Shown piece by piece: positions 875 through 62,288 of a stretch of DNA of 64,000 nt. Positions within the stretch are counted from its first letter, which is position 1; the number at the start of each line of letters is the position of its first letter. The stretch covers positions 62,001 to 126,000 of IMG/VR virus record IMGVR_UViG_3300046507_000773. One strand, 5' to 3'. The translations under genes were made by a program, and so were the position numbers. Below the pieces are notes generated by a model. That model saw only the letters and a program-made list of their open reading frames with translations, was not told the DNA's origin and ran no database searches.

Positions 875-906
875 TATTACAACCTCTTTAGTTTTTAGGG
901 ATAGTC

Positions 907-3339
907 GTGACTACCAACAACAGCTATCAAGACTACATGGATTCGGTGCTACAGTTGGCAGAGACGATTGTTATCAAATCGTCCGCTGCTGCTGAAGCGC
1001 TTAATCAGAAATTGGTAGAAGATTACGGGGCAAGTGTTGTTGACTCCCGCTACCCCTCTACCTGGAAGTATTACCTGAATCTTGCAGGTGAGTACCACCC
1101 CACCGATACCGTAATGACGGTCGTGTCAATGGATACATTGGAAAAAATAACTTTTTCCAAGACGAACCTCAAATTGCACCGAGCGACGGCTCGCGGCTAT
1201 GCGTTCGGTACCCGTCAATACAATTTGTTGGTATCCCAATACCCGGAACAATCTCTGCTCATCAAGGGCATCTTGAACCCGGTGGATATCGACGATGCCA
1301 TCGCAGCCGATGATGGCAAGATCCTTGGATACCCAGTAGGACTCGTAGAAGAAAACGAGTACTCCTTAATTGCCAAACTCCAGACGTGGGTAAATGGTTT
1401 TCGTGCCCGTTACGTGAACGAGCAGTTTAGTATCTCTGATTCCCTCTACACTTCATCGTGGATGGGCATCATGTACATGAACTTACCTGGCGCAATTGCA
1501 GGCTTGCGAAAGGAAGCTTGTCACACGAACGAAGCGCACAGCTACCACGTTAAACAGTACCTGGCAAGTCACGGACACCTGGACCAGTACATGGACCAGC
1601 TGACCACGAAGCAAGCTTTGTGGCTCTACCGTAACATCAGATACCTGCGCAACAACACGGGTAAGCAAGAGAACTTCGAGTGGCTCATAGAGCATATCAT
1701 GACCGAGCGTAACCTGCCCTTGGCAGAGTACAACATGCATCACGATGTCTCGGTAATGGCGGGTCACAGCGATTCGTCCATGATGCGCATGATGGCACTT
1801 GAGGCGCCGGTGGAAACTGGCTCACTCTATCCGGACATCAAATTTAAGAAGGTGCCGCTTAACCTCGGCTACAACTTGACTGACGATGATCCGGTGACGC
1901 TTGGCACCGTACTGGCGAAAGAAGATCGTTTTGCCAGGATGAACGCGAAGATCCGTTCAGTTGCACAGCCCCAGATTCAAGAGGCCATGGAGAACTCGCT
2001 CTCCAACTCGATCAAGACGAAGTTCCTCGAGTCCTCGATGGTTGACCGGAGTAACAACTCCCCGTACACGTTGGCCGACATCTTGCTCAGTCACTGGTTG
2101 TACTTGTCAGTCGAAGGAAACTATCGCGCTTTCATTGGCGTGACAAGCCCTAAAACTGGTGAGCGCATTCCACTGACGGTCAAGGATGCGTACATCTTGG
2201 TGTGGTACGCGTTCTGCCAGTCCAACGGTATCAAGATCGATACGATTCCAAAGGTTATTGCTGAGCGTGTCCAACGTCTGGATTCGCCAAGCGTCGATGA
2301 CCTGATGTCGATGGTCAGCAAGAAATACGTCTCCCGCGATATGGCCGAAGCGATTCTCGCACCGCAGCCAGTCATCGGGGACATCATCTCCACCGAAGCG
2401 TTCTATAACACCTGTCTTGAGATCTTTGACGCAGCCCAAGAGCAGCGCCGTTTGATCGCCTCGCAAGAGCATGCCAAACGTCGAGGCATGGTGTTTAACA
2501 TGGTGTCGCGGGTTTATTCCGATGCCCTCTGTACGCTCGTTGAAGATGGTGACGACGACTCGTATAAGTCCTGGTTTGCAGCCCGTAACATTGACATCGA
2601 TTCCTACTCGCAGACCGAGCTTGGTTTGCTGTATGTGAACCTCGTGCAAGAAGCAACGGGCATGAATCTGGTGACGACCAAGTCGCTCAAGGACTTGCAG
2701 TCTGCGATGGTGAGGATGCTCTCGCAGCTCTCCAGTTACAGTATTCAGATCAACGCCGACATCAACAGCTCGGATTTGCGTCTGTCTGACTGGGGCATGA
2801 TTCGTATCGGTGACGTGAAGTCGGACATGAACGACGAAGCGGCTGTCGAGATCGTGGCAACGGTTCTGAAGGCTTCGTCGCAGCTTAATGACGCAGGCGC
2901 CTTTGACGTCACGCGAGTAACACTTGGCAATGATCCAGTCGTCCAAATGAACGACCAGGTCAAGTACGACATCACAGCCAAGGTATTTGCGGGACGGGCT
3001 GATTCGGATCACGAGGGCAAGCTTAACGCTGCTCCAATTCGGATTCGTCCTATTCCGGCGCCTAAGAAGAACGCACTGGGCATCACGCCGGTGCTTGGTA
3101 TTGACCAGTACATCTTGCTGCCTGAAGAACAGCGAGTGGACTTCAATGACGTCTACGGTAACAAGTACGTGTACACCTACAAGTCCAATGGACCTGTGGT
3201 GACGCTGCCGCCGCTGTCGTCGATTGTCCCGGTCACTATCCTGAACGGCTTGACCTACGTCATTAGTGGCCCGATCCAGCAATCCGAACTGTCCAAGTCG
3301 CTGCGTAATACGTGGCTCGATGGCTTCGATAAAACCTAA
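907..3339 (+). CDS. Virion structural protein, probable baseplate component (phiKZ gp128-like)
   Basis: 810-aa ORF with the conserved-looking WKYYLNLAGEYH motif; lies next to the portal gene as in phiKZ-like phages. Confidence 0.6.
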   Translation: MTTNNSYQDYMDSVLQLAETIVIKSSAAAEALNQKLVEDYGASVVDSRYPSTWKYYLNLAGEYHPTDTVMTVVSMDTLEKITFSKTNLKLHRATARGYAFGTRQYNLLVSQYPEQSLLIKGILNPVDIDDAIAADDGKILGYPVGLVEENEYSLIAKLQTWVNGFRARYVNEQFSISDSLYTSSWMGIMYMNLPGAIAGLRKEACHTNEAHSYHVKQYLASHGHLDQYMDQLTTKQALWLYRNIRYLRNNTGKQENFEWLIEHIMTERNLPLAEYNMHHDVSVMAGHSDSSMMRMMALEAPVETGSLYPDIKFKKVPLNLGYNLTDDDPVTLGTVLAKEDRFARMNAKIRSVAQPQIQEAMENSLSNSIKTKFLESSMVDRSNNSPYTLADILLSHWLYLSVEGNYRAFIGVTSPKTGERIPLTVKDAYILVWYAFCQSNGIKIDTIPKVIAERVQRLDSPSVDDLMSMVSKKYVSRDMAEAILAPQPVIGDIISTEAFYNTCLEIFDAAQEQRRLIASQEHAKRRGMVFNMVSRVYSDALCTLVEDGDDDSYKSWFAARNIDIDSYSQTELGLLYVNLVQEATGMNLVTTKSLKDLQSAMVRMLSQLSSYSIQINADINSSDLRLSDWGMIRIGDVKSDMNDEAAVEIVATVLKASSQLNDAGAFDVTRVTLGNDPVVQMNDQVKYDITAKVFAGRADSDHEGKLNAAPIRIRPIPAPKKNALGITPVLGIDQYILLPEEQRVDFNDVYGNKYVYTYKSNGPVVTLPPLSSIVPVTILNGLTYVISGPIQQSELSKSLRNTWLDGFDKT

Positions 3340-3411
3340 GAAATTGCATGATGGTAACTTTCGAGCTACCATCATGTGACCCCTCTACAATCTGTTGTTA
3401 AAGGAATTACC

Positions 3412-4275
3412 ATGGAGTACATCACCCGGACCATTTATGGTGCCGCGCTGCAATCGGCGACGTTGCTGGGCAAATCCCCGAAGATCAACCCGCTGTCGAC
3501 GCTGAATACCAAGTTCGGCATCCTGGCCGACACCCTGCCCGGTGTAAATGAAATTCCGATCATGCAATATATGGCAATCGGTATCGGTGGTCACACCTAC
3601 ACCGTGGGCGGCAATGGCGTGCCGAAACCCGAACCGGTCCAGCACCGTTCGCGTGACGCATCCTGCTACAAGCCTCTGCCGTTCGTTCTGCGTGAAGCCG
3701 GTAACGACTTGTCCGACATCGATCGTCGCAAGTACGCCCTGCGCCGTGAAGAGACGCACAATGGTCTGCGTTACTTCGCCTACTACCTGCGCCGTATCGA
3801 TCTGGCAGGTGTTGACGTCGAATCGGAATACGTCACCGTTCAAGACGAGCAAGAAGTCGTCACTCCGTTCACCCCGGATTCGAGCGACCTCAATCCCCAG
3901 CCTCCGACGCTGTCCTCCACGGGTGTCAACACCGTAACTGCTGACTACCTGTCGGCTACGGCTAAGCTGACCCTGTCGCTGGACCCGACGGACGTCTCGG
4001 AACTCGTCAACGTGGCAACCGTCATGTTCAACGATCCGGACCTGGCCATCGTCTCCGAAGTTGCTCTTTGCAGCGGCGTGGACAAGCAAGCAAATTCGCC
4101 TGGTGCGGGTAACAGCCCCATCAGCTTCCTGGAAGCCATTGGCGTGCAGATCGTTTCGCACATCAACGCCTTCTATCCCCTGCGCTTTAGCCCGAACGGC
4201 GTGAACATCCTGCTCGACGCCGGCGCGACTGAACCGCTCTTTACCATTGCTGACGCGAGTGCCGTCGCAGCGTAA
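3412..4275 (+). CDS. Conserved phiKZ-like virion structural protein
   Basis: ATG at 3412 follows AAGGA. Motifs ITRTIYGAALQ, IGIGGH, PLPFVLR and AYYLRRID resemble a jumbo-phage structural family. Confidence 0.6.
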   Translation: MEYITRTIYGAALQSATLLGKSPKINPLSTLNTKFGILADTLPGVNEIPIMQYMAIGIGGHTYTVGGNGVPKPEPVQHRSRDASCYKPLPFVLREAGNDLSDIDRRKYALRREETHNGLRYFAYYLRRIDLAGVDVESEYVTVQDEQEVVTPFTPDSSDLNPQPPTLSSTGVNTVTADYLSATAKLTLSLDPTDVSELVNVATVMFNDPDLAIVSEVALCSGVDKQANSPGAGNSPISFLEAIGVQIVSHINAFYPLRFSPNGVNILLDAGATEPLFTIADASAVAA

Positions 4276-4306
4276 AGGGTAGCGCACCTTCTTAGGAAAC
4301 TACTAG

Positions 4307-4900
4307 ATGTTGATGATGCCCAGTGGCGCATCACGTATTGCTCGTATCATCGGAATCGACCCTGGAACTAACACTTTCGGGGTCGCCGAGTTAAGCTTTG
4401 ACGTGGTGAGTCTTGAAGTAGTAAATGTGACGGCAGCTACGCTTGTGGCTGCTAAGCACACCAAGGACTTTTGGTCCAACGAGATTCATGGCGATCGGTT
4501 TAGCCGACTGTCCTGGCTCGGGGAACAGCTGCTGGAAATCTTCCACGTCTCGGACCCATTCCGCGTGGCTATTGAATCGCCTTTCTTTAGCCGTTTGCAC
4601 CCGAACGCTTTCGAGCCACTGGTAGAGACCAAATGTCTGGCACGCCGTACGCTGGCACGCTTTACCGCCTGGAAGTCGCTTCACGAATACGATCCACCCT
4701 CGGTTAAGAATGCCGTCGGTGGGAAGGGGAACGCTGACAAGAACAAAATGAAAGAACTTGTCTGCGGTCTTAACTTACCATACTCGGGCAATTGCTCGAT
4801 CAATGAACTGGACGAGCACTCGATTGACGCCATCGCCGTGGCCATCTGCGCTTTCCAGGACATGCTGGAGGAACTATGTTTGAAGCAGCAGCAATTCTGA
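4307..4900 (+). CDS. ruvC: Holliday junction resolvase, RuvC-like
   Basis: RuvC catalytic motifs IIGIDPGT, VAIESPF, VKNAVGGKGNADK and DEHSIDAIAVA. Confidence 0.88.
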   Translation: MLMMPSGASRIARIIGIDPGTNTFGVAELSFDVVSLEVVNVTAATLVAAKHTKDFWSNEIHGDRFSRLSWLGEQLLEIFHVSDPFRVAIESPFFSRLHPNAFEPLVETKCLARRTLARFTAWKSLHEYDPPSVKNAVGGKGNADKNKMKELVCGLNLPYSGNCSINELDEHSIDAIAVAICAFQDMLEELCLKQQQF

Positions 4901-5337
4901 AATCCAAGCTTTTCCAGCTTGGTGTCTTGGCGGCCTTGGTCGTCGGGACGATTTTCTTCTTTACCCACCAGGAAAAGAAGATCGACACTCTGAACCAAGA
5001 CCTGGGCGCAGCTCACGTCGTCAACGCGGTTCAGACCGATACCATCGACAAGCAGGACAAGTCCAGTAAAGTCGACGACAAGGTTGTTGCGCACGCAGCC
5101 GAGAAGCAGCAGGTCGCTGTGGAAACCACTCGTGCGCGCAAAGTCGAAACGGCAAAGAAGATCGCCGTCATCGAACAAAAGTACGAAGCCCTTCCCCAGA
5201 CGGAAGACAACACCAAAGCCGAGGTGCGCGAAAAGAGCATTACTCGGTTGGAGTCTCTCCATCAGGCCTACTGCATGACGTCACCGAATATTCAAGGATG
5301 CCCGGTGGTGGAAGATGTCACGATCACGAAGGAGTAA
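4876..5337 (+). CDS. Candidate inner-membrane spanin (Rz-like)
   Basis: Single N-terminal TM segment, long helical/coiled-coil region and C-terminal Cys pair; directly upstream of a lipoprotein gene. Confidence 0.6.
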   Translation: MFEAAAILKSKLFQLGVLAALVVGTIFFFTHQEKKIDTLNQDLGAAHVVNAVQTDTIDKQDKSSKVDDKVVAHAAEKQQVAVETTRARKVETAKKIAVIEQKYEALPQTEDNTKAEVREKSITRLESLHQAYCMTSPNIQGCPVVEDVTITKE

Positions 5338-5344
5338 GATCAAA

Positions 5345-5731
5345 ATGCGTCTCTATTACACTGAACCGCCAGTGTCACCCATGGCAGCTAAAGTCATGGC
5401 CGCTATTCCGTCCATTCTCCTGGCTATCCTGATGATTCTCATCGGCGCCAGTGTTTCGGGCTGTGGCACGCAACAACCCATCGTCGTGACCAAGTACGTC
5501 TTGGAAACGCCACCGGATGCTCTGCTGCAAGACTGCCCGGCTGTGCCTCCGCCGGATGAAAGCTTGTACCTGGACAAAGGGTTCGACGGCAAGGAGCAAA
5601 TGTTCACTGATACGTTGTCCGACAACTATCAGGTCATCACCGTGTGCAACATCCACAAGTCGGAGTTGCGGGCATGGAAGAAAGATCAGATCGAGATCTA
5701 CGCTGCGAAGAACAAGCAGGGAGCAAAGTAA
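5345..5731 (+). CDS. Candidate outer-membrane spanin lipoprotein (Rz1-like)
   Basis: Hydrophobic signal with lipobox VSGC. Pro-rich PPDALLQDCPAVPPP and C-terminal CN...LRAW are typical of o-spanins. Confidence 0.7.
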   Translation: MRLYYTEPPVSPMAAKVMAAIPSILLAILMILIGASVSGCGTQQPIVVTKYVLETPPDALLQDCPAVPPPDESLYLDKGFDGKEQMFTDTLSDNYQVITVCNIHKSELRAWKKDQIEIYAAKNKQGAK

Positions 5732-6198
5732 TGGCTCTGCAGTATCGCATTCTGAAGGGTATTGACGACGTCAAGCCCGTCATGTCGCATTCGTCGGCGC
5801 ACACGCCACTGAACAACCTCATCGCTTCTTACATGAAGCTGGCGGTCCACGACGACAACCTTCCCAACATCACGCAGCTGACAACTGGCGCTGACTTCAA
5901 GGCCGCCATTTCGCTTCTGGACGCAGAGATCTTGATTGATCTTCTGAAAGCCTTCGTGGATGAACAGCGTACCGTTCTTCATGGCTGGCATCCAAAAGAA
6001 AGTGCTGAGAAGGTAGCTGACCGTAATCTCAAGCACTGGCTGATCAAGTTTGGCGCATTCGCTTTCTACACGACCTTCGGTGGCCTGATCTTTGCAGTGT
6101 ACCGCTCCGGCGCCATGGACAATGGCGACGTGGTCAAAGCCATCTTCAGTCGTGCAGTTGACGTGGCCAAACTGATTTTCTCAATCTCGACAAAGTAA
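5731..6198 (+). CDS. Membrane protein, holin-like candidate
   Basis: TAATG coupling to the o-spanin gene; C-terminal TM segment followed by an amphipathic helix. Confidence 0.4.
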   Translation: MALQYRILKGIDDVKPVMSHSSAHTPLNNLIASYMKLAVHDDNLPNITQLTTGADFKAAISLLDAEILIDLLKAFVDEQRTVLHGWHPKESAEKVADRNLKHWLIKFGAFAFYTTFGGLIFAVYRSGAMDNGDVVKAIFSRAVDVAKLIFSISTK

Positions 6199-6239
6199 GG
6201 AAGAAGCATGAAACCATACTGGATGACGCGAGGCTTTAA

Positions 6240-6863
6240 ATGAGCCGCCTCGCTTTCCTGCGTGTGGCCCTCGAGGATAACTCGGACGGTCAAGCGCACC
6301 GTGAAATCGAGCACACCTTTTTTGCTCGTCTGGAAAACAAAGACCTCTTGAAAGAAGCCAAGGGGATGGAACACCAGGAGCAGTGGGAGATCCGCATCGA
6401 GAAGACGGACAAGAACGCCGTGACTGGCAAGTTCCGTGTTCGTAAGACGGTGAAGGAAGGCCAAGATCCTGAATACGTCCTGACCTGCAAAACCGCAGGC
6501 AAGGCCGAAGGCTCGATCGAAGTCGGCGTGCCGGTTTCCGAACAGATGTTCACGCAGTTCAAGATGATGGCCGAAGGTGGCATGGTCAAGGACCGCTACT
6601 TCTTCCCCGTGGAAGGTTCGGACCTCGTCTGGGAAGTGGACATGTTCCTGCGCAAGGGTTCGCAGCCGGGTTCCGGCGAGTACGAAGACTGGTGCAAGAT
6701 CGACCTGGAAGTGCCTTCGCTCGACATGGCATTGCCACCGATCCCCCAGGGCTTCTCGGAAGTCATCACGAACCCGTACGGCAAGCGTACCGAAGCGGAA
6801 GACGCCAAGGTGCTGTCCTTGTTCCACAACGAGTTCCTGACCCCGAACCCGTACCTGAAGTAA
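6240..6863 (+). CDS. CYTH-domain (triphosphate tunnel metalloenzyme) protein
   Basis: ExE-type motif REIEHTF, plus RVRK, LTCK, KDRYFF, WEVDMF and IDLE in CYTH order. Confidence 0.7.
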   Translation: MSRLAFLRVALEDNSDGQAHREIEHTFFARLENKDLLKEAKGMEHQEQWEIRIEKTDKNAVTGKFRVRKTVKEGQDPEYVLTCKTAGKAEGSIEVGVPVSEQMFTQFKMMAEGGMVKDRYFFPVEGSDLVWEVDMFLRKGSQPGSGEYEDWCKIDLEVPSLDMALPPIPQGFSEVITNPYGKRTEAEDAKVLSLFHNEFLTPNPYLK

Positions 6864-6866
6864 AAG

Positions 6867-6909
6867 CAGCATAAAACCCCACCCTCACAAGGGGTGGGGC
6901 AATATGCCG
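6867..6909. terminator. Hairpin terminator of the GCATA/TATGC-flanked family
   Basis: CAGCATA-AAA-CCCCACCC TCACAAG GGGTGGGG-CAA-TATGCCG after the CYTH gene. Confidence 0.7.
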
Positions 6910-6925
6910 GAAAAGTCGATTCAAA

Positions 6926-6953
6926 GAAATTACAACAACATATTGTTTCCGTG
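6926..6953 (+). promoter_or_regulatory. Candidate phage early promoter (ACATAT-N7-GTG)
   Basis: AT-rich site upstream of a cluster of small genes; the same core occurs at 41119 and 62311. Confidence 0.55.
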
Positions 6954-7005
6954 AGATTGAATAAGTCTCTTTCATTAACTTCATTATGAACGGAAAATAA
7001 TCAAT

Positions 7006-7188
7006 ATGAATATCCATCAGAATGCCCAAGCTTCTTTGAATCTGGCTCGCCAGTTCTTGCAAGAAGATCGCGAAGCTTCTCGCGGTAACTCCCAGAAAGC
7101 CCATGTGAGTGGTTTTCAAGTTATGACGCCTAATCAGCGTGAACTCACCAATACGCTGCTTAACACCCTTAAAGAACTTCGCAACTAA
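7006..7188 (+). CDS. Small hypothetical early protein
   Basis: 60-aa ORF, first after the putative early promoter. Confidence 0.55.
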   Translation: MNIHQNAQASLNLARQFLQEDREASRGNSQKAHVSGFQVMTPNQRELTNTLLNTLKELRN

Positions 7189-7263
7189 GTAGGACTTAGT
7201 GGCGAGGGCAAGGGTCCTCATCAGTAAGCCTTACTACCAACCATCCTAAGAAGGGATAAAATC

Positions 7264-7581
7264 ATGCGCAAACCTGAATCGAAGTTTTTGAAAATGCAAG
7301 GTCCCGAAGCTGGTCCTGTCATTCCGCCGCTGGAAGGTCTTCGGCCCTTCGCTAGCACTAACCCCACTTACCAGATCTTGCTCAGCGGTCAGCAAGCAGG
7401 TAACATCATCATCGCCAAACAGAAAGAAATCCTTCAACAACTGAAGGATGAGAAAATCTCGCACGATCAGTACGATGAATTGTTCGCCCCCTGGAAAGAG
7501 CGCTTCGAGCGCCTGATGAAAGCGCAGGACGATCTGGACAACGACGCGATTCTCGCGATCATCGAAGAGTGCAAGAAATAA
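7264..7581 (+). CDS. Hypothetical protein
   Basis: RBS AAGGGA and phage-like codon usage. Confidence 0.7.
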   Translation: MRKPESKFLKMQGPEAGPVIPPLEGLRPFASTNPTYQILLSGQQAGNIIIAKQKEILQQLKDEKISHDQYDELFAPWKERFERLMKAQDDLDNDAILAIIEECKK

Positions 7582-7610
7582 TCAACCCTCTTATGAAAAG
7601 AGAAGCTACC

Positions 7611-7922
7611 ATGAATAACGTCAAAGATATCATCAACCTCATCATCAACGCTTCGGTCATGTCGATCGAGGAACAACTTCTCGAGACCTACCGCCACGAG
7701 GCGGACGTCACGTTGGCCGAGATGGACAAGTGCGCTCGCGCTTACTACAAGCGCTATCCGAACCAGGAAGAGTTCGCGCACAACCAACTCAACATCATCG
7801 AGTGCAGCCTGATGGTTGAGCGCCTGATCGAGCGTAAAGAGATCATCGAATTGGACTGCTTCATCCGCGTGATGGAAAAAGAAGCCTACCGCATGCGCCT
7901 GATGACGCCCCGTCGCCGTTAA
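7611..7922 (+). CDS. Hypothetical protein
   Basis: ATG at 7611; co-oriented operon. Confidence 0.7.
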   Translation: MNNVKDIINLIINASVMSIEEQLLETYRHEADVTLAEMDKCARAYYKRYPNQEEFAHNQLNIIECSLMVERLIERKEIIELDCFIRVMEKEAYRMRLMTPRRR

Positions 7923-7937
7923 TTGAAAGGAAGTATC

Positions 7938-8354
7938 ATGCTTGAGAAATTTGCAAAACTGGTTCTGAAACTTATCTGGTTCGTGAGTCTGGGTAAGGAA
8001 GAACAACCAGGCCGTGACCGTGCAGAAGCGCACGTCAGTTACATCCGCCGCTACTCGAAGGTCAACGACCTGATCGAAAAGTCGGCGCGCCTCTACATCA
8101 GCATCGCCGAGAAGGACGGCCCGAGTGTTCACAATGAGGAGTACTCGATCCTCATGCAGCGCTCCATCGCTCACAAGGCAAAGGCTCAGGAAATGCTCCA
8201 GAGTCTTGACCGCATGATGTTCAAGAAGAAGTTCGACGAAGACGACAAGCGTCGCTGCAATGAAATGATGCAGGAATTCGCAGCATCAGTCGTCGGCCTT
8301 GAACTGGTGTTCAATGCGCTGTCTGCCATGGTTCAGCGCGTGAAGGAGGGTTAA
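7938..8354 (+). CDS. Hypothetical protein
   Basis: RBS AAGGA before ATG 7938. Confidence 0.7.
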   Translation: MLEKFAKLVLKLIWFVSLGKEEQPGRDRAEAHVSYIRRYSKVNDLIEKSARLYISIAEKDGPSVHNEEYSILMQRSIAHKAKAQEMLQSLDRMMFKKKFDEDDKRRCNEMMQEFAASVVGLELVFNALSAMVQRVKEG

Positions 8355-8355
8355 G

Positions 8356-8787
8356 ATGTTCGGTGTCTATGTCAACTTCAACGATCCAGAAATCGAGAAC
8401 TGCTGGCTGTTCCACGATGAGATGCCAGCGGGTCGTCACAACTACTATCTCTACGATACGCCGAATCATCCGTACCTGGTCGAGAAGCAGGAGCACGCCG
8501 AAGACATGATTCGTGCGATCGCTACCTTCTTCTCGTTCAGTGGTCCGGACTTCGATGCAGACCTCGTGTATCGTGGTCGCGATGAGCGCGTCTTTACTCC
8601 GAAGGAATTCGATTCGGTGCTCGAACGCCTGAACGAGGAAATTGACGCCATCCTCATCGATGATCCGGAAGCCATTGAAGAAGATGGTTTGGGAAGCGTG
8701 GAAGAACAACGCCAGCAAGCGATCAAGAAGATCGAGTTCACGATCGAGCAGTTCATGCACGTACCGGTGCAGATGTTCACTTTGTAA
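8356..8787 (+). CDS. Hypothetical acidic protein
   Basis: RBS GGAGG; 143-aa ORF. Confidence 0.75.
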   Translation: MFGVYVNFNDPEIENCWLFHDEMPAGRHNYYLYDTPNHPYLVEKQEHAEDMIRAIATFFSFSGPDFDADLVYRGRDERVFTPKEFDSVLERLNEEIDAILIDDPEAIEEDGLGSVEEQRQQAIKKIEFTIEQFMHVPVQMFTL

Positions 8788-8869
8788 GAACGTATCGGGG
8801 AGGGCAGGTGCCCTCTCCAATGCGCGTTTATGCCGCATTTTTCTAACCCACAAAAAGAAAGGCTTTACC

Positions 8870-8998
8870 ATGCAATCCGAATTCCAAATCGCCCAAGCTA
8901 AAATCGATCGTAACAACAAGATCGATTGGCCGCTCGTTGTCATCACCGTTGTTCTGGTTGTTGGCTGCATCTGGAAAGCTGCCCAGTTGATCGGCTAA
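8870..8998 (+). CDS. Small single-pass membrane protein (42 aa)
   Basis: RBS AAAGG; translation MQSEFQIAQAKIDRNNKIDWPLVVITVVLVVGCIWKAAQLIG. Confidence 0.55.
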   Translation: MQSEFQIAQAKIDRNNKIDWPLVVITVVLVVGCIWKAAQLIG

Positions 8999-9094
8999 TT
9001 CATTTAACCATTTTTTAAGGAGGTACCCGCAAGCCAACATTGATTCCTTCGATAGTGTCGACAGTTTGTTTGATTACTCGAATGGAGAAGTTTC

Positions 9095-9520
9095 ATGCCC
9101 CATATACTGAAAAACCCAGAAAAATACATAGGCCATGGTTTGGTCGGCGAAGGTAATTGCGTCGACTTGATCAAAGGCACTATCGACGACCTGAAGGAAA
9201 GGTCGACAGCTACTTGGAAGCCGGGTGAACTCGTGCTCGCTTCCAAGGATTTGAAGAAGGGCACCGCAATCGCTACCTTCTTGTGCGGCCGTTATCCCCA
9301 AGACGGCGTCACCGGCAAACATGCCGCAATTTTTCTGAGGTATTGGGGAAAGCCGAATCCCGATGGAACGTATAATTCCATCCTGGTCCTCGACCAGTGG
9401 AAATCTCGAGGAAATGCCATGACCCGCGAACTTCGAAAGACTGGTCGCACCGGCATGGCCTGCAGCGGAGGCATCTACGATGCTTCCAATACCCTAGATG
9501 CTTTCTACGTCATTGAGTGA
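9095..9520 (+). CDS. T6SS amidase effector-like protein (Tae2/BPSL0067-like NlpC/P60-fold peptidoglycan amidase)
   Basis: VGEGNCVDL (catalytic Cys), TATWKPG, GTAIATF, GRY, GKHAAIFL (catalytic His) and VLDQW match the Tae2/Dae2 motif order; no signal peptide. Confidence 0.8.
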   Translation: MPHILKNPEKYIGHGLVGEGNCVDLIKGTIDDLKERSTATWKPGELVLASKDLKKGTAIATFLCGRYPQDGVTGKHAAIFLRYWGKPNPDGTYNSILVLDQWKSRGNAMTRELRKTGRTGMACSGGIYDASNTLDAFYVIE

Positions 9521-9527
9521 GGTTATC

Positions 9528-9995
9528 ATGAGCTTTCGTCAAATGGTCCTGCTGGTCCTTATCGCTTTAGCTTTGCCCTTTCTGGTGCTTCCCAGGAGCG
9601 CCTGGTCCCAAGAACTGGCACAAGAAGCAGTATCACAATGTCCCGCGGAATATCCGCGGCGCAGCGTCAAACTCCCCGATATGCCGAAAGGCTGGATGGG
9701 GAAGGTCAACTTCGAGCCGAAGCTGCAAAGTGCAGGAATCATCCAGGGCAATCCCTTTGCCCTAGGTGAGCTCGCACCGATTAGCGAGTACAAGAAAGAC
9801 GGGAAGACGTTCGCGTACTTCTCGAATTTCCCGGAAGGCTCGCAGCGCGATGTCTACCTGTCGTGCAACTACGGCTACCTCGGCGAGATCCAGCTCTTCA
9901 AGAAGCTGCCGGTCACCGTCAAGCAATGTACCTTCCAATACAAGGACGACACCGAGAATCATATCCTCGTCCTTGAAAGTCTCACCTGTAGTTAA
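9528..9995 (+). CDS. Periplasmic immunity-like protein (Tai2/STY0301-like)
   Basis: Sec signal ending AWS-Q. Pattern CP...P.GW...G.P...L.P...LSCNYG...LP...C...C; 7 nt downstream of the amidase gene. Confidence 0.7.
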   Translation: MSFRQMVLLVLIALALPFLVLPRSAWSQELAQEAVSQCPAEYPRRSVKLPDMPKGWMGKVNFEPKLQSAGIIQGNPFALGELAPISEYKKDGKTFAYFSNFPEGSQRDVYLSCNYGYLGEIQLFKKLPVTVKQCTFQYKDDTENHILVLESLTCS

Positions 9996-10049
9996 ACCCA
10001 TGCCCCGCAGTACCCCTGCGGGGAATAAACTTCCTAAGAAAGGAAAACC

Positions 10050-10619
10050 GTGTCGCACACTACTTCTATTCGTATCGAAACCGAAGGTCTCGGCCTCGGT
10101 CCTGCTGCAACTATCTTGAACGAAATGCGTGCAGCTTACGGCAACCCGATGCACGCTATCGGTCGCGCCATGAACAACCTCATCAATCGCATCACGAGTG
10201 AGACCCGTGACCCGGTTGCCATCGAACTGCGCTTCGATGAGAAAGGCTCGATCAATGCATTCGAGCAGTTCCGTTTTACCAAGCCCGGTAAGAAGGTCGA
10301 GTTCTACGTCGAATACAACAACGGCGGTGAACACGAATTCGATCGTGAAGTCAACCACAAGTTTATCGGTGGTCAACAATTCGAGACGCGCGCAATCGCC
10401 CTGATCGAAATGGCCAGTGTCGACAGTGATCGTGTCTGCACCGCTGGTATGTCGGCAATGATCCGCGGCTTCATCAACCAAGCATCGGTCTTCGCCCAGA
10501 AGCACTCCATCGCCGTGGACGACGATGGTGTTACGGTGGCTCTGTGGTTCAAGAACGACCGCGAGAAGATCGTCGGTATGATGGGCATCCACTTCCCTGG
10601 CCTGAAGGTGAAAGCGTGA
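10050..10619 (+). CDS. Hypothetical protein (paralog of next gene)
   Basis: RBS AAGGA with GTG start. Confidence 0.7.
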   Translation: MSHTTSIRIETEGLGLGPAATILNEMRAAYGNPMHAIGRAMNNLINRITSETRDPVAIELRFDEKGSINAFEQFRFTKPGKKVEFYVEYNNGGEHEFDREVNHKFIGGQQFETRAIALIEMASVDSDRVCTAGMSAMIRGFINQASVFAQKHSIAVDDDGVTVALWFKNDREKIVGMMGIHFPGLKVKA

Positions 10620-11155
10620 AGACTCACAACGAGAACCTCAACATTTCGTACGATCAGTTCGAGCCTGACGAACTTTTCTTCGTGTTTGCTCACAACTTCA
10701 TGCGAGCAGGTCTTCCTACCGCCATGCGTCAAGCGCTCGAAGCAGCGGTGGATGAACAGATTTTGCATGAAATGAAAGACCCCGAGTGCAAAATCGGCTA
10801 TCGGGCGACTCGCTCCACCTACGGTAAGGAGCAGCACCTGAACTACTTCGAAGAGTTCATCGTCAACCAGGCTCTGGGTGGTCGCATTCGCATATATGCG
10901 GAGTTTGCCAATGATCCTAATCATCGGATCGATGCAACTAAAAATCACATACTGATTGATGTGGATGAAAAATCATCCGACCAGCTTATGCCAATCATGT
11001 CTGAAATTTACCATACCTACTTGGAGGACATTGCCATGTTCTGGTCAAGTCACGCTGACAGCATCAGCTACGTCAAAGACGACAAGACTTCCACCATCGG
11101 GCTTTGGTTTGAACACGAGCACGGCAGGGCATTGGTGGCCGTAGAAATTAGCTAA
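10616..11155 (+). CDS. Hypothetical protein (paralog of previous gene)
   Basis: GTGA overlap with the upstream stop codon; shares FE.F...Y.E.NN/D and LWF motifs with it. Confidence 0.65.
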   Translation: MKTHNENLNISYDQFEPDELFFVFAHNFMRAGLPTAMRQALEAAVDEQILHEMKDPECKIGYRATRSTYGKEQHLNYFEEFIVNQALGGRIRIYAEFANDPNHRIDATKNHILIDVDEKSSDQLMPIMSEIYHTYLEDIAMFWSSHADSISYVKDDKTSTIGLWFEHEHGRALVAVEIS

Positions 11156-11221
11156 GCAGTATCCCTGACGGGAATGGCTCTTGTCAGGTTTTTTCTAATC
11201 GTTCCTAAGAAAGGAAACACC

Positions 11222-11728
11222 ATGAATACCACCATCAACAATGACGCCGTTGCCACCCAGCGCGAAATCCGTACCGACAGCGATCGTCTGTTTGCGGCGG
11301 TGTATGCCGCAACTGCTTCGATCGAATACAATGCTGAGTGGGCCAACGGCACCGGCTACTTGGGCGGCGCTACGTCGTACGAGAACCGTCACTTGGTTCC
11401 AATCGGCGAAGTGCGTCGTACCATCGATGACTTCGGTCGTCGCATCCTGCTCGTCGGTACTTTCTTCGGTCCGGCAGTCGTGTTCGATCGCTACGGTCCC
11501 AAAGAAAAGAACGGCGCCTACGTCTGCAACGTCAGCAACCAGCTGCGCGCCTGCGGTCTCGTGACTGGCTCGTCGGCATTGTCGTACAACGAGCTGATGG
11601 AAATCATCGGAAGCGAATACGACATCTCCTACGGCAACGTGGGTCAACGTGTCGAGAAGTTCCGTAAAGCAGTCACGCTGTACGAGCGTGTGGATGCTGG
11701 CCTCGAAAAACCCACTCCTCGCATGTAA
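11222..11728 (+). CDS. Conserved phage hypothetical protein
   Basis: RBS AAGGA; motifs WANGTGY, DDFGRRILLVGT and VVFDRY. Confidence 0.75.
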   Translation: MNTTINNDAVATQREIRTDSDRLFAAVYAATASIEYNAEWANGTGYLGGATSYENRHLVPIGEVRRTIDDFGRRILLVGTFFGPAVVFDRYGPKEKNGAYVCNVSNQLRACGLVTGSSALSYNELMEIIGSEYDISYGNVGQRVEKFRKAVTLYERVDAGLEKPTPRM

Positions 11729-11734
11729 AATGCC

Positions 11735-12010
11735 GTGAAGCGCTTTCTTAAGTTTAGCGCTGTCCTCGTGTGCCTACTGCTCGTTGCAGTGGGCATCTTC
11801 GACATAGAGCTTTTGAAGTTAGTTCCTAGCTTCTTGGTTCTTTGGTATTTCTGCCCCCACTTCAACATTCTGGGTGGTAGTTGCGGGGATGAGATCGAAA
11901 TCATCCTGTACTTTATTTTCCAGCTCACGGTAACGGGAATTGGATTTTGGATTATTTACGCCATTTACATGGGAGCATGCGAATGGTGGAATGAAAGGAA
12001 AGTGAAATGA
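11735..12010 (+). CDS. Small membrane protein
   Basis: 2-3 hydrophobic segments. Confidence 0.55.
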   Translation: MKRFLKFSAVLVCLLLVAVGIFDIELLKLVPSFLVLWYFCPHFNILGGSCGDEIEIILYFIFQLTVTGIGFWIIYAIYMGACEWWNERKVK

Positions 12011-12384
12011 AAATCGTTGACCGTAAAACCTTCTTGGCCCTTCCCGATGGGACGGTGTTTCGCCGCTTTCTCGAGGGTACCATTCAGGAGACTCTTGAAG
12101 TCAAGGGAAATACCACCCGCGAAATGACGGATGATTTCGCCGGAGACTTCAACACCATGGAAGTCGGTGGCCGGATCGAGATGGAAGATCCGTCGAAAAG
12201 CGAGCATGTCGCGGCCGAGAAAGCGGCTGAAACCGGTGCGAGCCTTCCCATCATGTTCGACGGATGGGGACGCGACGGCGGCTACGACGAAGAAGAGTGG
12301 TACGCTGTCTACGAAGTCCAGGAGATGGCCGCCATGATCGCGATGCTGACCAAGTGCTATGACCAAGTTATGTTCGGTAAGTAA
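12007..12384 (+). CDS. Hypothetical phage protein
   Basis: N-terminus MKIVDRKTFLALPDGTVF; ATGA overlap with the upstream gene. Confidence 0.75.
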   Translation: MKIVDRKTFLALPDGTVFRRFLEGTIQETLEVKGNTTREMTDDFAGDFNTMEVGGRIEMEDPSKSEHVAAEKAAETGASLPIMFDGWGRDGGYDEEEWYAVYEVQEMAAMIAMLTKCYDQVMFGK

Positions 12385-12386
12385 TC

Positions 12387-12426
12387 CGGCATAAAGCCCA
12401 GTGACCCCTAACGGGAGTCACTGGGC
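12387..12426. terminator. Hairpin terminator between convergent genes
   Basis: Stem GCCCAGTGAC...GTCACTGGGC; TTTATGCCG tail on the minus strand. Confidence 0.7.
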
Positions 12427-13952: not shown

Positions 13953-16055
13953 TTAGGCCACCTGAACCAGGCGAACCGGACGGCAACGAAGCGTCGTCGT
14001 CTTTGCCGAATAGTTTTCCGTACCAGCCGAGCTCATGAGCTTGGTCTTGGCTTGGTAGTAGTAATCGGTGTGATACGCACCTGGCGTGTAACTCACGACA
14101 CCGTAGGCCTGATACTGGCAAGACCAACGCGTTGTGTTAAGCGAACCAGGCTGACCGTTGGGGCCGATACTGAAGAAGTAACCGACGCTTTGGTTGACTA
14201 CAGTACCTTTGCTGCACGAGGCAGGCGGGCTCGATGGATCACTTGGGCCGTACCAGGCAGACGCCGAGTAAGGACCGTCGGTCTGCGTGTAGTAACCGTA
14301 GTTCGGGGTCGACGCATCCTGGTAGGTGTTACTCCAGTTATACGCCGTGCTCGTCCAGTAGTAACCCGTTTCCAGGAACGCTTCTGCACCACCCGCCTTG
14401 TAAGCAGCCGGAGCCGTCGCCAGACTTGGGCGCATGGTCGTCCAGATGAGTTGCAGAACTTTCAGAGCCGGAACTTGCCAATCATTAAAGCCGCCGATTG
14501 TCAAGCCCTTCACCGTGTTGACCACAGTGCCCGCATTCGAACTTGCCACCAGTGCAGTCGTGTTCGCCGTCGAATCATTGTCCGACGTATTGAACGTCTG
14601 AGCAACGCTGGAAGTGAGCGGGGCGGAAATCTCTGCAGACTTCGGCGCCACGATCACAGCGAAAGTACCCACGCCGATTTGGATGTCACCAGCGTAGAAA
14701 CCACCACCGAACGTTTGACCCACCACGGTAGGACGCGGGTCCCACTTAGCGATGAACGACACATCCGCTGTCCAAGCCGAGTAACCGTACTTCGCACCGC
14801 GATGGCGTGCACGAGCGTAGTACGTTCCGTTTTGCACCAAGATGCCCGGAGCGACATTGATCGTGAGCTTGTTGACCAGATCGTTGACCGACGACCAGAC
14901 ACGCGTGCCAGAACCATTCGGACCCGTCCACACTTCCCAATCCGTTCCTGCATGGGTATCGGTGCTGCCGATGACCGCAAATGCAGTAGTCGTAATGGTT
15001 GGCGTTTCCGTGTTCGTCTGTGCTCCTGGCGTAGGTGCTGTGAGCGACGGTTGCTTGATGCTGATGCTGGCCGTGCTGAACGACGTAGCAACAGACCAAT
15101 CGGACCACACGCCTTCGATGTCCTGATAGCGGCATCGCCAGTAGAACGTCGTACCCGGCGGGAAGAGCGTATCGGGTTTGAACGACAACGCAGCCGCAAT
15201 CGTCTTGTCGTACAGCAGGTTCGAGAAGTCAGGCGTGGTCGATACCTGGAACTGCGCTGCACCTTGCGGTACACCGTAGAGACTCTGGTAGCGATACGTC
15301 ATGAGAGGCGACTCCAACGGCACATTGGAATCACTCGGGATGGGTGAGATGTTCAGCGGCTGACGAACGACTGCCAGTTGTTTTGCCACGTCACTTGCCA
15401 GAGCAAAGGTCGGATGGGGATTCGCTGCATCGATGTGTTGCTGCATCGTACCCGAAGCACCTGCGCCACTTACCGTTTCCGCGTCACTCAACGCCCGCTT
15501 GATGAAGTCCGACAACGCCTGCTGCGCTGCTTGATTGCCGGTTGCGACCGCGACCTTCAAGCGCTTAATGGCTTCCACCAAATGCGCCATGCCGTAGATC
15601 GTGATCGAATGCTGCTTGTGCGCTTTTGGATTAAAGAGCTCAGGCACCCCAACCAGATCAGTGAATGGAATGTCTTCGCCATCGACGTCGACGGAATCGA
15701 CGATTTGAATCAGCGCTCGGCGGGAAGTGCTTTCCTCACCACCCAGAACCTGGTAGGTAAGTTCCACAGGACCCATCACGTTTTCATCCGTAATGAGAAC
15801 GATCGCACAGATCGACTTCCCGTATTTGGCAGTTAAGGCAACGTCCATTTCACTGGGGCGAAATTGCACACCCGGTGTCAAGGGCTGACCAGAGGCAAGG
15901 TCTTTGACATGCATGGTCTTGCCGAAGAACAGGCCGTAATCTGGGAGTACGGCCCGTACCTTCCTACCGTTGAGCGCATGGGATTCTCCTGAGACTTTGT
16001 TGGATGCTTTCACACCCGTTTCGTCCAAGGGATATTTCAAGAGAATATCCGACAT
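13953..16055 (-). CDS. Tail fibre / receptor-binding protein paralog 4 (attachment domain, 2 FN3-like repeats, DUF1566/CLec-like tip with large insert)
   Basis: N-terminal YPLDETG..N.V.GE motif; FN3-like YWRCRY..WSDWS and YARARH..YSAW; tip motifs GGFYAG, GFNDWQVP, YWTST and RCRPVRLV. Confidence 0.8.
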   Translation of the reverse strand: MSDILLKYPLDETGVKASNKVSGESHALNGRKVRAVLPDYGLFFGKTMHVKDLASGQPLTPGVQFRPSEMDVALTAKYGKSICAIVLITDENVMGPVELTYQVLGGEESTSRRALIQIVDSVDVDGEDIPFTDLVGVPELFNPKAHKQHSITIYGMAHLVEAIKRLKVAVATGNQAAQQALSDFIKRALSDAETVSGAGASGTMQQHIDAANPHPTFALASDVAKQLAVVRQPLNISPIPSDSNVPLESPLMTYRYQSLYGVPQGAAQFQVSTTPDFSNLLYDKTIAAALSFKPDTLFPPGTTFYWRCRYQDIEGVWSDWSVATSFSTASISIKQPSLTAPTPGAQTNTETPTITTTAFAVIGSTDTHAGTDWEVWTGPNGSGTRVWSSVNDLVNKLTINVAPGILVQNGTYYARARHRGAKYGYSAWTADVSFIAKWDPRPTVVGQTFGGGFYAGDIQIGVGTFAVIVAPKSAEISAPLTSSVAQTFNTSDNDSTANTTALVASSNAGTVVNTVKGLTIGGFNDWQVPALKVLQLIWTTMRPSLATAPAAYKAGGAEAFLETGYYWTSTAYNWSNTYQDASTPNYGYYTQTDGPYSASAWYGPSDPSSPPASCSKGTVVNQSVGYFFSIGPNGQPGSLNTTRWSCQYQAYGVVSYTPGAYHTDYYYQAKTKLMSSAGTENYSAKTTTLRCRPVRLVQVA

Positions 16056-16072
16056 GCAAATGCTCCTAATTG

Positions 16073-17932
16073 TTAAGTGAGGCTCTTGAGATTGATCAAG
16101 CGTACTGCTCGCACAATCTGGCTGGTGGTTTTAACGGCTGGCGTAGGCACGCTGTTGTCCAGCATCGAGTGCGACACGGCCTGGTAAAGGGTCGTGCCAT
16201 TCGATGCCACGTCTTCAGCAGTCGAACTCCAGTAACTCGTTCCCGTTGCCAAGGTTTCAGAACCGCCAGATGCAAACGTCGCTGGGATGCCCGATGCGGT
16301 CGGTCGCAAGAACTCGAAGATCTTCTTGAGAACGCCTTCAGAAGGAATCTGCCAATCCGTGTAGCCGCCCGTTGACAACCCTTTCACATAATTCGCCGCA
16401 GGGGAGTTACCCGCCGTGTAGAACTGCGAAGTGTTGTAGACAGCATCGAGCACCTCGTACGCCGCAATACGCGTATTGACGCTTTGCAGAGCGAGCGAAC
16501 TTTCCGTCGACTTGGGAGCCAGCACGATCGCAAAATCGTTCCGGTCAATGGTGACGGTGCCTGCAAAGAGACCGCCTTGGAAGGCAGTACCGATTGCCGT
16601 TGGCAAGAAGACGTTGGCCGTCATGAAGACGCAGTCGTCGGTCCACTGCGAAGAACCGTTGGCCGCACTGTTGTGACGGGCACGTGCGTAGTACTTGGTA
16701 CTTGCCGCCAGTTTGCTTGCTGCCACCGTGATCGATGTTTTGTTCGTCGTGTCGTTGAGCGAAGAGAACACGATAGTGCCGCTACCGTTAGGACCGGTCG
16801 ATACCTGCCAGTCGGTAGAAGCATGCGTGTCATTCACACCCAGCGTTGCAAATGCCGTCGTTGCCAGAACAGGTGTTGCACCCACGGCGGTTGCATTGTT
16901 ACCTGGACGCGTCATCGAAGGCGACACGATACCCGAAGCAATCGTCACAAAGCTCGTCACTTGCGACCACTCGGACCAAGCGAGTTCTTCGCTACGGTAA
17001 CGGCAACGCCAGTAGTAACGGCGACCCGGATCGAGGACACCAGCAAAAGCCGTCGTGTAACCGGCGTAAGTATTCGTTTTGTCGAACACCACACTCGTGA
17101 AAGCTGCGTCGGTAGCAATCTGGAACTGCGCCCCGTTTTGCTCCTCTTCGTACAGGCCGAAGTACTTGCCGCCGTGCAGATTGATGTTGGTTCGCGAAAC
17201 GTTCGCAGCACCATCGACAGGCGACTGGTTCACCGGAGGACGCACCATCGGCACCGCTTTAGCGATGTCAGCAATGCGAGCGTATTGCGGGTGCACGTTC
17301 GGATCATCCGTGTGCTGTTTGATCTGGACCTGGACCGAGTTACTCGAATCACGAGCAATCGTGTCCGCATTTGTCTTGGCGTAATCCTTGATCGCGTCGG
17401 TGTACTTTGGATCGTAGTCGATCTTGTCGGTAGCCAGTCGGTTGATTGCCATGACGGCGATCTCGTGGCCGCTTACCACACCTTTGTAAAACTGCGGACC
17501 TTCCGTGCTGAGTTGCTCAACAGGAGTTAGCAGAGCCTGCCAATCACTGGAGCGATCGTTCTTCACACGGCGTTTCAAAAGGTCGACGATGTTCTGTGCT
17601 GATACTGCAAAGTCCCCGCCCAATACCTGATAGTTGACAGCCACTTCGTTGATGGAAGTATCCGTCACCACGATAAGACCGGCTACCGTCTTACCGAAAC
17701 GCGCCGAGGGCACATCGTAGCGATACGCCACGTAATACTGCGTGCCGTACGTGAGAGGCAAGCCGTTGGCCGTATTGACCACCGAAATGCCGTCACGAAA
17801 GAAAGCGCCGTATTTAGGAGCGATCACACGCAGCTTCAGATCCGGTGGGAACGGGTAACGCTCCCCTGCCACCTTGTTATTGACGCTGGTGCCCGTGGGG
17901 TCCAGCGGATAACCGAAAGTGTCTGTTGCCAT
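16073..17932 (-). CDS. Tail fibre / receptor-binding protein paralog 3 (no insert)
   Basis: Same architecture: YPLDPTG, VHPQY, 2 FN3-like repeats, GYTDWQIPS, YWSST and VRAVRLI. Confidence 0.8.
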   Translation of the reverse strand: MATDTFGYPLDPTGTSVNNKVAGERYPFPPDLKLRVIAPKYGAFFRDGISVVNTANGLPLTYGTQYYVAYRYDVPSARFGKTVAGLIVVTDTSINEVAVNYQVLGGDFAVSAQNIVDLLKRRVKNDRSSDWQALLTPVEQLSTEGPQFYKGVVSGHEIAVMAINRLATDKIDYDPKYTDAIKDYAKTNADTIARDSSNSVQVQIKQHTDDPNVHPQYARIADIAKAVPMVRPPVNQSPVDGAANVSRTNINLHGGKYFGLYEEEQNGAQFQIATDAAFTSVVFDKTNTYAGYTTAFAGVLDPGRRYYWRCRYRSEELAWSEWSQVTSFVTIASGIVSPSMTRPGNNATAVGATPVLATTAFATLGVNDTHASTDWQVSTGPNGSGTIVFSSLNDTTNKTSITVAASKLAASTKYYARARHNSAANGSSQWTDDCVFMTANVFLPTAIGTAFQGGLFAGTVTIDRNDFAIVLAPKSTESSLALQSVNTRIAAYEVLDAVYNTSQFYTAGNSPAANYVKGLSTGGYTDWQIPSEGVLKKIFEFLRPTASGIPATFASGGSETLATGTSYWSSTAEDVASNGTTLYQAVSHSMLDNSVPTPAVKTTSQIVRAVRLINLKSLT

Positions 17933-17956
17933 TCTTTACTCCTGCTTGAATAGAAA

Positions 17957-17976
17957 AGGGAGGCCGAAGCCTCCCC
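17957..17976 (-). terminator. Intrinsic terminator between fibre genes
   Basis: GGGAGGC-CGAA-GCCTCCC hairpin with a U-tract on the minus strand. Confidence 0.7.
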
Positions 17977-17978
17977 GC

Positions 17979-20147: not shown

Positions 20148-20231
20148 TTAGTTGCTCCGTAAAAGGAAATTAAAGGGTTGACGTAATAACTGCCCGTAGC
20201 AGCCCATGTCGGACCGCTACGGGCAGACGGA

Positions 20232-20876: not shown

Positions 20877-20884
20877 GTTTTTCC

Positions 20885-24545: not shown

Positions 24546-24587
24546 CGGCATACGGCCCCACCCTTTTGGGGTGGGGCTTTATGACCG
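24546..24587. terminator. Bidirectional terminator, GCATA/TTTATG family
   Basis: CGGCATAC-GGCCCCACCC TTTTG GGGTGGGGC-TTTATGACCG between convergent genes. Confidence 0.8.
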
Positions 24588-29531: not shown

Positions 29532-29582
29532 CGGCATAAGCGCCCCGCCTCAAAAGGGCGGGGCTTTATGACGCTTATGCTG
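29532..29582. terminator. Bidirectional terminator with doubled TTATG tail
   Basis: CGGCATAAGC-GCCCCGCC TCAAAAG GGCGGGGC-TTTATGACG-CTTATGCTG. Confidence 0.8.
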
Positions 29583-34547: not shown

Positions 34548-34600
34548 CGGCATACAGCCCCGTCCTCACAAGGGACGGGGCCTTTATGACGTTTATGCCG
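34548..34600. terminator. Bidirectional terminator with doubled TTTATG tail
   Basis: CGGCATACA-GCCCCGTCC TCACAAG GGACGGGGC-CTTTATGACG-TTTATGCCG. Confidence 0.8.
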
Positions 34601-44185: not shown

Positions 44186-44226
44186 CGGCATATTACCCCA
44201 CCCCAAAAGGGTGGGGCTTTATGCTG
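44186..44226. terminator. Bidirectional terminator, GCATA/TTTATG family
   Basis: CGGCATATTA-CCCCACCC CAAAA GGGTGGGG-CTTTATGCTG. Confidence 0.8.
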
Positions 44227-62248: not shown

Positions 62249-62288
62249 CAGCATAATGGCCCTCCCGTCCTGGGAGGGCTTTATGCCG
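62249..62288. terminator. Terminator, GCATA/TTTATG family
   Basis: CAGCATAAT-GGCCCTCCC GTCCT GGGAGGGC-TTTATGCCG. Confidence 0.8.

Follow-up and report, generated by a model that had tools for sequence, protein, structure and literature searches.

Toxin-immunity pairs of type VI secretion systems (T6SS) are understood as bacterial weapons, and are at times carried by temperate phages as cargo of benefit to the lysogen. The Tae2/Tai2 effector-immunity module of Salmonella pathogenicity island 6 (SPI-6) cleaves the cross-links between meso-diaminopimelic acid and D-alanine (mDAP-D-Ala) in peptidoglycan, and Tae2 makes part of a characterised Hcp-effector pair. T6SS effectors and polymorphic toxins residing as morons on temperate phages have been documented (PAAR2-TseV-TsiV, B. 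gladioli prophage AB4; MuF toxins). A pair of genes of the Tae2/Tai2 type, hereafter A and B, was identified in a 64-kb stretch of phage DNA (the window), corresponding approximately to positions 62,001–126,000 of the 226,810 bp IMG/VR contig UViG_3300046507_000773. These genes are carried by a jumbo phage of the phiKZ-like group, and searches of a phage database and of the literature revealed no virulent phage of the phiKZ type with a Tae2/Tai2 pair. Judged from sequence, A and B are novel and divergent representatives of two families already known, and very probably make up a functional toxin-immunity module acquired by the phage. The finding suggests that a virulent phage can borrow genes of bacterial warfare.

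The product of gene A fits the NCBIfam profile BPSL0067_fam (NF033857) over positions 3–115 of 115, with 87.8 bits (cutoff 27, E 5.9e-25). In the PDB a single sequence is matched (E 7.9e-12), entry 6WIN, titled 'Type 6 secretion amidase effector 2'. An AlphaFold (AF2) model of A, built from 24 relatives, has a predicted local distance difference test (pLDDT) score of 90.4, and 6WIN is again its sole significant fold match in the PDB (E 2.4e-9, template modelling (TM) score 0.77, 30% identity). The catalytic residues of Tae2, given as Cys23 and His73 in the paper describing 6WIN, pair with Cys22 and His76 of A in the HMMER alignment with S. Typhi Tae2, and both residues are invariant across the 24 relatives. 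The N-terminus of A agrees with that of the family and has no hydrophobic segment, and the protein is made of a single small domain. Pfam searches with A and with B gave no match. Nothing significant was found with the A model in the viral structure library BFVD, where the best hits were weak CHAP and lysozyme matches. Membership of A in the Tae2 family of amidases is strongly supported by profile, alignment and model, and by analogy with characterised members the enzyme would cleave the mDAP-D-Ala cross-links of peptidoglycan. A differs from the solved Tae2 by two extra cysteines (Cys64 and Cys123) and by a 12-residue insertion, located at about residues 84–95, past the strand of the catalytic His.

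Gene B starts at ATG 9528, not at ATG 9498 as in the list of open reading frames, and public gene calls on the contig concur. Its product matches NCBIfam STY0301_fam (NF042415) with 66.7 bits (cutoff 22, E 1.8e-18). A word-index protein search with B returned nothing beyond B itself; an exhaustive HMMER search of 1.84 billion representatives yielded 110 relatives (E<=1e-3), with identities of up to 37%. Across 40 of them, aligned together, Cys113, Cys134 and Cys154 are invariant, Cys38 is conserved in at least 90%, and a hydrophobic, signal-like N-terminal segment is found in every one. The putative Sec signal of B itself, as read from the sequence, consists of a basic residue, a hydrophobic run (16 residues) and, around residue 27, an A-W-S site. 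The model of B (pLDDT 88.1) features a helix at residues 3–19. No solved structure related to B by sequence, profile or fold was found in the PDB. The identification of B as an STY0301/Tai2-type immunity protein, predicted to be periplasmic and probably stabilised by disulfides, is strongly supported, and the protein, once exported by Sec, would bind and block A in the periplasm as its counterparts do.

An earlier note on this DNA, made from the letters and the open reading frames, had described a signal-less protein of 141 residues with an intact Cys-His dyad, followed by a Sec-exported four-cysteine partner, and had proposed searches with the BPSL0067 and STY0301 profiles. Both families were matched far above their cutoffs, and leader, dyad, signal and cysteines are as described there. 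The locus resembles the bacterial T6SS pairs (S. Typhi SPI-6, 6WIN; Burkholderia BPSL0067) in the families assigned by hidden Markov models, in the fold of the effector and in its catalytic Cys-His. The pairs share also a small leaderless effector, the effector-then-immunity order, a near-zero spacing between the genes, and a Sec-exported four-cysteine partner. In contrast to them, A and B reside in a jumbo phage with no T6SS genes in the window, delivery by a T6SS is here only proposed, and A is at most 42% identical to any genome copy. With the morons of temperate phages the locus has in common a phage-borne antibacterial toxin and its cognate immunity, carried as accessory cargo. Temperate morons, however, integrate and clearly benefit the lysogen, whereas the phage in question is of a virulent type, independent of host RNA polymerase, with no integrase in the window, so that a benefit of the cassette must come during infection.

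In ticks, a domesticated Tae2 (Dae2) represents another case of a tae2 gene that left its T6SS setting by horizontal transfer and kept the catalytic pair. Dae2 has acquired a secretory signal and is not known to have an immunity partner; the phage effector, on the other hand, has remained leaderless, and its immunity gene travelled along. Spackle of phage T4, which acts on the gp5 lysozyme, is like B a phage-encoded periplasmic inhibitor of a peptidoglycan hydrolase. The two are unrelated in sequence and fold, and the target of Spackle is a virion protein encoded elsewhere, whereas A is the apparently co-translated neighbour of B. Endolysins of the CHAP and NlpC-P60 types, such as LysK, feature the same papain-like Cys-His peptidoglycan amidase fold. 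Unlike them, A has no cell-wall-binding domain and no lysis-cassette context, is paired with an inhibitor, and is not conserved among relatives of the phage.

Relatives of A were sought in 185,579 species genomes. The best is 42% identical and was found in Massilia, followed by copies in Duganella, Janthinobacterium and other Burkholderiales; the bacterial copies closest to A belong to the Oxalobacteraceae. Tae2/Tai2 pairs are common in this family as in other Burkholderiales, and often occur in multiple copies per genome. Plasmid copies were found in 4 of 72,556 plasmids. Among 119 loci fetched through A-like genes, 91 carry a gene of the B family directly downstream on the same strand. An hcp gene (PF05638) is located immediately upstream in 6 of the related loci, including those of Undibacterium, Sapientia and Inhella; most other copies are orphan pairs distant from T6SS clusters. 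In the Enterobacter plasmid pENT01, according to the NCBI annotation, a BPSL0067 family protein adjoins an STY0301 family protein at 2.5 kb from tssI/vgrG. No match was obtained by tblastn of A and of B against 50,697 GenBank phage records, and no homologue of the pair in BFVD.

In a neighbour-joining tree, A branches with a 62%-identical protein (P0002) encoded by a phage-like contig of 9.9 kb (86% bootstrap). The two belong to a clade of five members (92.5%), in which are found also a 128.8-kb IMG/VR contig (L001) and two short contigs, one featuring the gene beside a patatin gene. Cys64, Cys123 and the insertion are common to the clade members, and the B gene, with signal and four cysteines, accompanies the effector in all four members with available DNA. 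The viral nature of L001 is suggested by its listing in IMG/VR and by one PHROG match; a neighbouring protein of 1,048 residues has no phage match. In the comparison of L001 with L122, synonymous divergence (pS) is 0.82, a saturated value, and non-synonymous divergence (pN) reaches 0.18 in A and 0.34 in B: in this clade a constrained enzyme is accompanied by a faster-evolving immunity protein. The extra cysteine pair and the loop insertion define a distinct Tae2 subclade, suited for comparative structural work.

A-like genes were found in 38 IMG/VR contigs, and differ in their surroundings. In three elements (L004, L005 and L008) Tae2/Tai2 pairs adjoin an integrase or primases, as in integrative elements. 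Other contigs, such as L020, L022, L032 and related phage contigs, carry a distant Tae2-like gene (~31% identity) a few kb from the large terminase gene, without an immunity gene. These Tae2-like genes may represent endolysin-type uses of the fold. A conserved gene for 178 residues, of no known function, lies just upstream of them. Two further loci are of different architecture. The first (L023, positions 1555–7162) encodes an Rhs-repeat protein of 1,589 residues, ending with a Tae2-like domain and followed by two STY0301-like genes; here the two effector-immunity families take the form of a polymorphic toxin. The second (L024, positions 2770–7029), located in an 86.6-kb IMG/VR contig, encodes a protein of 1,419 residues featuring Phage_lysozyme and Tae2-like domains, which may be a virion-associated double lysin built on the Tae2 fold.

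The pair is a mobile unit of about 1 kb. A contig of 99.6 kb assembled from another sample (Logan, SRR31724269; L124 hereafter) is syntenic with the window gene for gene, but lacks A and B. The two sequences align by blastn at positions 1–8975 (83.5% nucleotide identity) and 10031–10668 (76.8%) of the window, with no alignment between, and 42 bp are found in L124 in place of the cassette. Both cassette genes are intact, none broken. Two close phages, otherwise syntenic, differ thus naturally by the presence or absence of the pair. Prophage DNA or bacterial contamination of the contig was considered as well, and is ruled out by the syntenic phage DNA at both flanks. L124 fails to align also at 10668–11200 and 11921–12379 of the window, which denotes additional fast-changing genes in this block. 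A search of IMG/VR with the flanking genes retrieved the contig of the window only, and two metagenome scans yielded no additional relatives.

The G+C content of the cassette is not deviant. Codon usage, in contrast, shifts exactly at its ends. The codon adaptation index (CAI) is 0.58 for A and 0.65 for B; rare codons number 5 in A, where 0.74 would be expected (P=0.001; two are ATA and two AGG), and 3 in B (P=0.05). The genes flanking the cassette have CAI values of 0.73–0.83 and zero rare codons. The use of ATA and AGG, codons rare elsewhere in the window, had already been remarked in the earlier note, and the counts agree with it.

In a variant phage (L127) the cassette and its immediate flanks are 97.8% identical to those of the window, whereas the next gene upstream is 84.5% identical, which indicates that the cassette region moved between diverged backbones. 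Identical cassettes were found in four further contigs from other samples, and the cassette was recovered in all from at least 5 samples. A and B in the window and in L127 differ by 12 synonymous and 1 non-synonymous changes (binomial P=1.9e-7 against neutrality); the proportions are 4 to 1 for A alone (P=0.012) and 8 to 0 for B alone (P=5.8e-6). The cassette is under purifying selection. Chance open reading frames are ruled out by these values as by the E-values of the family matches. Taken as a whole, composition and comparisons point to a cassette, or 'moron', of bacterial origin in a variable accessory-gene unit, and are compatible with gain in one lineage as with loss in the other. L127 features also an extra gene for 128 residues (positions 650–1044 of that contig), set between a gene for 143 residues and that of the small membrane protein, on the upstream side of the cassette, which marks this spot as a hotspot of accessory-gene turnover.

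The nature of the carrier is confirmed by its gene content. The contig is longer than 200 kb, and the window encodes, from the split multisubunit RNA polymerase, a phiKZ-type beta-like subunit (phrog_3148), 48% identical to that of Burkholderia phage FLC9, a giant virion protein of 2,232 residues with a transglycosylase/SLT domain, an S80 prohead protease (Peptidase_S80), an SbcC-like protein and RuvC. On these markers the phage belongs to the phiKZ-like jumbo phages, the nucleus-forming type with two RNA polymerases. FLC9 is the closest cultured phage, followed by Ralstonia and Xanthomonas jumbo phages; no nucleotide-level match of the window was found. Phages of the phiKZ type are known as strictly virulent, and independent of host transcription. 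A lytic lifestyle of the carrier is suggested by its membership in this group and by the lack of an integrase within 64 kb. Pfam searches of the genes called across the window revealed neither T6SS nor integrase families, and a six-frame search with the Hcp profile gave no match, in line with the earlier note, which had seen no T6SS structural genes. In that note the pair was placed in the early region of a lytic jumbo phage. The jumbo phage stands; the early region is a supposition. No recognisable early-promoter motif was found, and sigma-70-like matches occur at background level. The host likely belongs to the Oxalobacteraceae or to other Burkholderiales.

Arming of the host T6SS is, by analogy with the bacterial pairs, a possible role of the cassette, and the one preferred here. 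In infected cells the leaderless A would be loaded onto the Hcp of the host's own T6SS and fired into neighbouring cells, where it would cut peptidoglycan cross-links in the periplasm. B, exported by Sec, would protect from A the cells infected by the same phage, and the cassette would serve infected cells as a competition device, possibly a self-promoting one. The T6SS route is favoured because A features only the traits of a free Hcp-cargo effector, the intact cognate immunity gene has been kept, and the cassette has spread between backbones. Delivery of A by this route is nevertheless a tentative proposal; for the whole statement, functional acquired module plus T6SS delivery, a probability of about 0.4 seems adequate. 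The stronger version, in which a virulent jumbo phage arms the infected cell so that neighbours without the cassette are killed, competitors and cells infected by rival phages included, and the element promotes itself and spreads by recombination, is doubtful; self-promoting spread between backbones is hinted at by the contrast in identity between cassette and upstream gene in L127. If true, infected cells would join contact-dependent bacterial warfare for the benefit of the virus. Even as mere accessory cargo, the pair documents that genes of bacterial competition move through the genomes of virulent phages.

Several points weigh against T6SS delivery. The route presupposes a T6SS in the host, its activity in infection and a fit of A to its Hcp. 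Killing of uninfected neighbours could cost a lytic phage its future hosts, and the phage can dispense with the cassette, as its absence from the sister L124 shows. Enzyme activity and binding of A by B are predicted from family membership, and the two clade-specific cysteines, with the insertion beside the active-site loops, might point to a changed specificity or use.

Protection of the infected cell had also been put forward in the earlier note. The selected function would be that of B, which would shield the wall of the infected cell from Tae2-type attacks of neighbouring bacteria, or of other infected cells, during a long infection cycle, with A kept mainly by linkage. The frequency of Tae2/Tai2 pairs, often multicopy, in the likely host group fits this explanation, as do the intact signal and cysteines of B and its lack of non-synonymous changes (0 against 8 synonymous) between the phage variants. 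Yet no other immunity protein exceeds 37% identity to B, and within the clade these proteins evolve rapidly (pN 0.34, compared with 0.18 for A), which makes broad cross-protection doubtful, and mere linkage leaves unexplained the constraint on A itself (4:1, P=0.012; catalytic pair intact). Protection stands therefore as a candidate in weakened form, and as the principal function is unlikely. The third role envisaged there, that of a lysin with its antilysin, is disfavoured as a primary one by the absence of the cassette from L124 and from GenBank phages; an essential endolysin is ruled out by its lack in the syntenic L124. A could still be an accessory lysin, held in the cytoplasm until the membrane is permeabilised and then aiding wall breakdown, with periplasmic B buffering leakage and sharpening the timing of lysis. 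Tae2 resembles CHAP-type endolysins such as LysK, CHAP and lysozyme folds were the weak hits in the viral library, small membrane proteins are encoded nearby (8870–8998 and 11735–12010), and lysin-like uses of Tae2 occur on other phage contigs, as the L024 protein and the copies near terminase genes. Such lysin-type copies, however, lack B, an exported stoichiometric inhibitor would work against lysis, and no holin, spanin or endolysin family was matched among the cassette neighbours in Pfam and PHROGs. The accessory version is judged somewhat less probable than protection.

Presence/absence polymorphism among close relatives, unadapted codon usage and location in a hypervariable block of genes without known relatives are what one would expect also of a neutral passenger, recently introduced by illegitimate recombination and bound to be lost. 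This is improbable given the strong purifying selection between variants (12:1, P=1.9e-7), the 97.8% identity of the cassette in a variant in which the adjacent upstream gene is at 84.5%, and the recovery from at least 5 samples. The 62%-identical copy on another phage-like contig, and the 128.8-kb viral contig carrying the pair within the 92.5% clade, speak in the same sense. The least probable alternative is a block of superinfection, in which A, in or with the virion, would breach the wall at entry, and B would neutralise the A of later phages. The precedent is T4 Spackle, a phage-encoded, exported protein that inhibits a wall hydrolase of phage origin (PMC7677548). But A has the size of a free Hcp-cargo effector and no virion-attachment domain, a virion lysin of the usual phiKZ type is already present in the window (2,232 residues, SLT domain, not Tae2-like), B matches no solved structure by sequence or fold, and L124 enters cells although it lacks the pair. 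T6SS delivery of A is the reading retained here, with the reservations listed above. The features of the cassette and of its surroundings are collected in Table 1.

Table 1. Coordinates, in the window, of the A-B cassette and of associated features.
Feature	Position	Strand	Description
Gene A	9095..9520	+	141 residues; predicted leaderless peptidoglycan amidase of the Tae2/BPSL0067 family; Cys22 and His76 catalytic (predicted)
Gene B	9528..9995	+	155 residues; STY0301 family (Tai2-type, predicted); putative Sec signal ~1–27; Cys38, Cys113, Cys134, Cys154
Cassette (insertion/deletion unit)	8976..10030	+	1,055 bp; the sister phage L124, syntenic here, has 42 bp instead
Non-coding leader of A	8999..9094	+	96 nt; ribosome-binding site GGAGAA 6 nt ahead of the ATG
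A-B junction	9515..9530	+	last codon and stop of A, ribosome-binding site of B GAGTGAGG, 7-nt spacer, ATG of B
Hairpin 3' of B	10003..10023	+	8 bp, G+C-rich, no T-run; inside the cassette
Right junction	10031..10046	+	motif TTCCTAAGAAAGGAAA ahead of the next gene; kept in L124; exact repeat at 11202–11217
Small membrane-protein gene	8870..8998	+	42 residues, single-pass; conserved in L124
Unit hosting the cassette	6910..12386	+	~15 small genes of no known function or relatives

The ribosome-binding site of B, GAGTGAGG, overlaps the last codon and the stop of A, and only 7 nt separate the stop of A from the start of B; spacing and overlap fit coupled translation, and A and B are apparently coupled in this way. 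In the leader of A the promoter scan flagged no sigma-70-like promoter. The AT-rich 10-mer GTTGTTAAAG, found enriched in the promoter search, is not intergenic. At the opposite end of the cassette, the 61-nt stretch 9990–10050 folds as RNA with -20.5 kcal/mol (z = -3.9), and the hairpin therein may be a terminator or a stabiliser carried in with the genes.

The right-junction motif TTCCTAAGAAAGGAAA is found, in addition to the exact copies listed in Table 1, at 7243–7258 with 3 mismatches. The left junction (~9008–9030) bears a loose likeness to it. Copies of TTCCTAAGAAAGGAAA are located directly 5' of start codons, and form a small stem-loop that takes in the ribosome-binding site.

The unit hosting the cassette is delimited by motif-bearing terminator hairpins at 6867–6909 and 12387–12425. 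The whole block has no counterpart in FLC9. Searches of PHROGs and Pfam with the neighbouring small genes gave nothing except DUF1722 (E 6e-6), matched by the gene at 7923–8354 (+ strand). At the gene for the small membrane protein (8870–8998), the public caller had placed an opposite-strand open reading frame of 65 residues (8843–9040); conservation favours the plus strand.

The 13-nt motif CGGCATAAAGCCC occurs 11 times in the window with <=2 mismatches, against 1.2 occurrences expected. The sites include 6867–6909 and 12387–12399, at the two edges of the unit, as 24546–24586, 29561–29573, 34548–34591, 44214–44226, 53340–53352 and 62276–62288. Several of those read directly are located at the ends of gene blocks beside hairpins, and the motif has the look of a terminator or unit-boundary signal particular to the phage.

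Elsewhere in the window, a gene for 128 residues at ~5345–5731 (+ strand) has a 'faint' precomputed match to PF23793 (LysC), a possible, unconfirmed lead to a lysis-related function. Four consecutive paralogous genes at 13953–23203 (- strand) encode large proteins, virion structural or tail-fibre-like, of 700, 619, 722 and 772 residues, which have an N-terminal phrog_2163 module in common and divergent C-termini.

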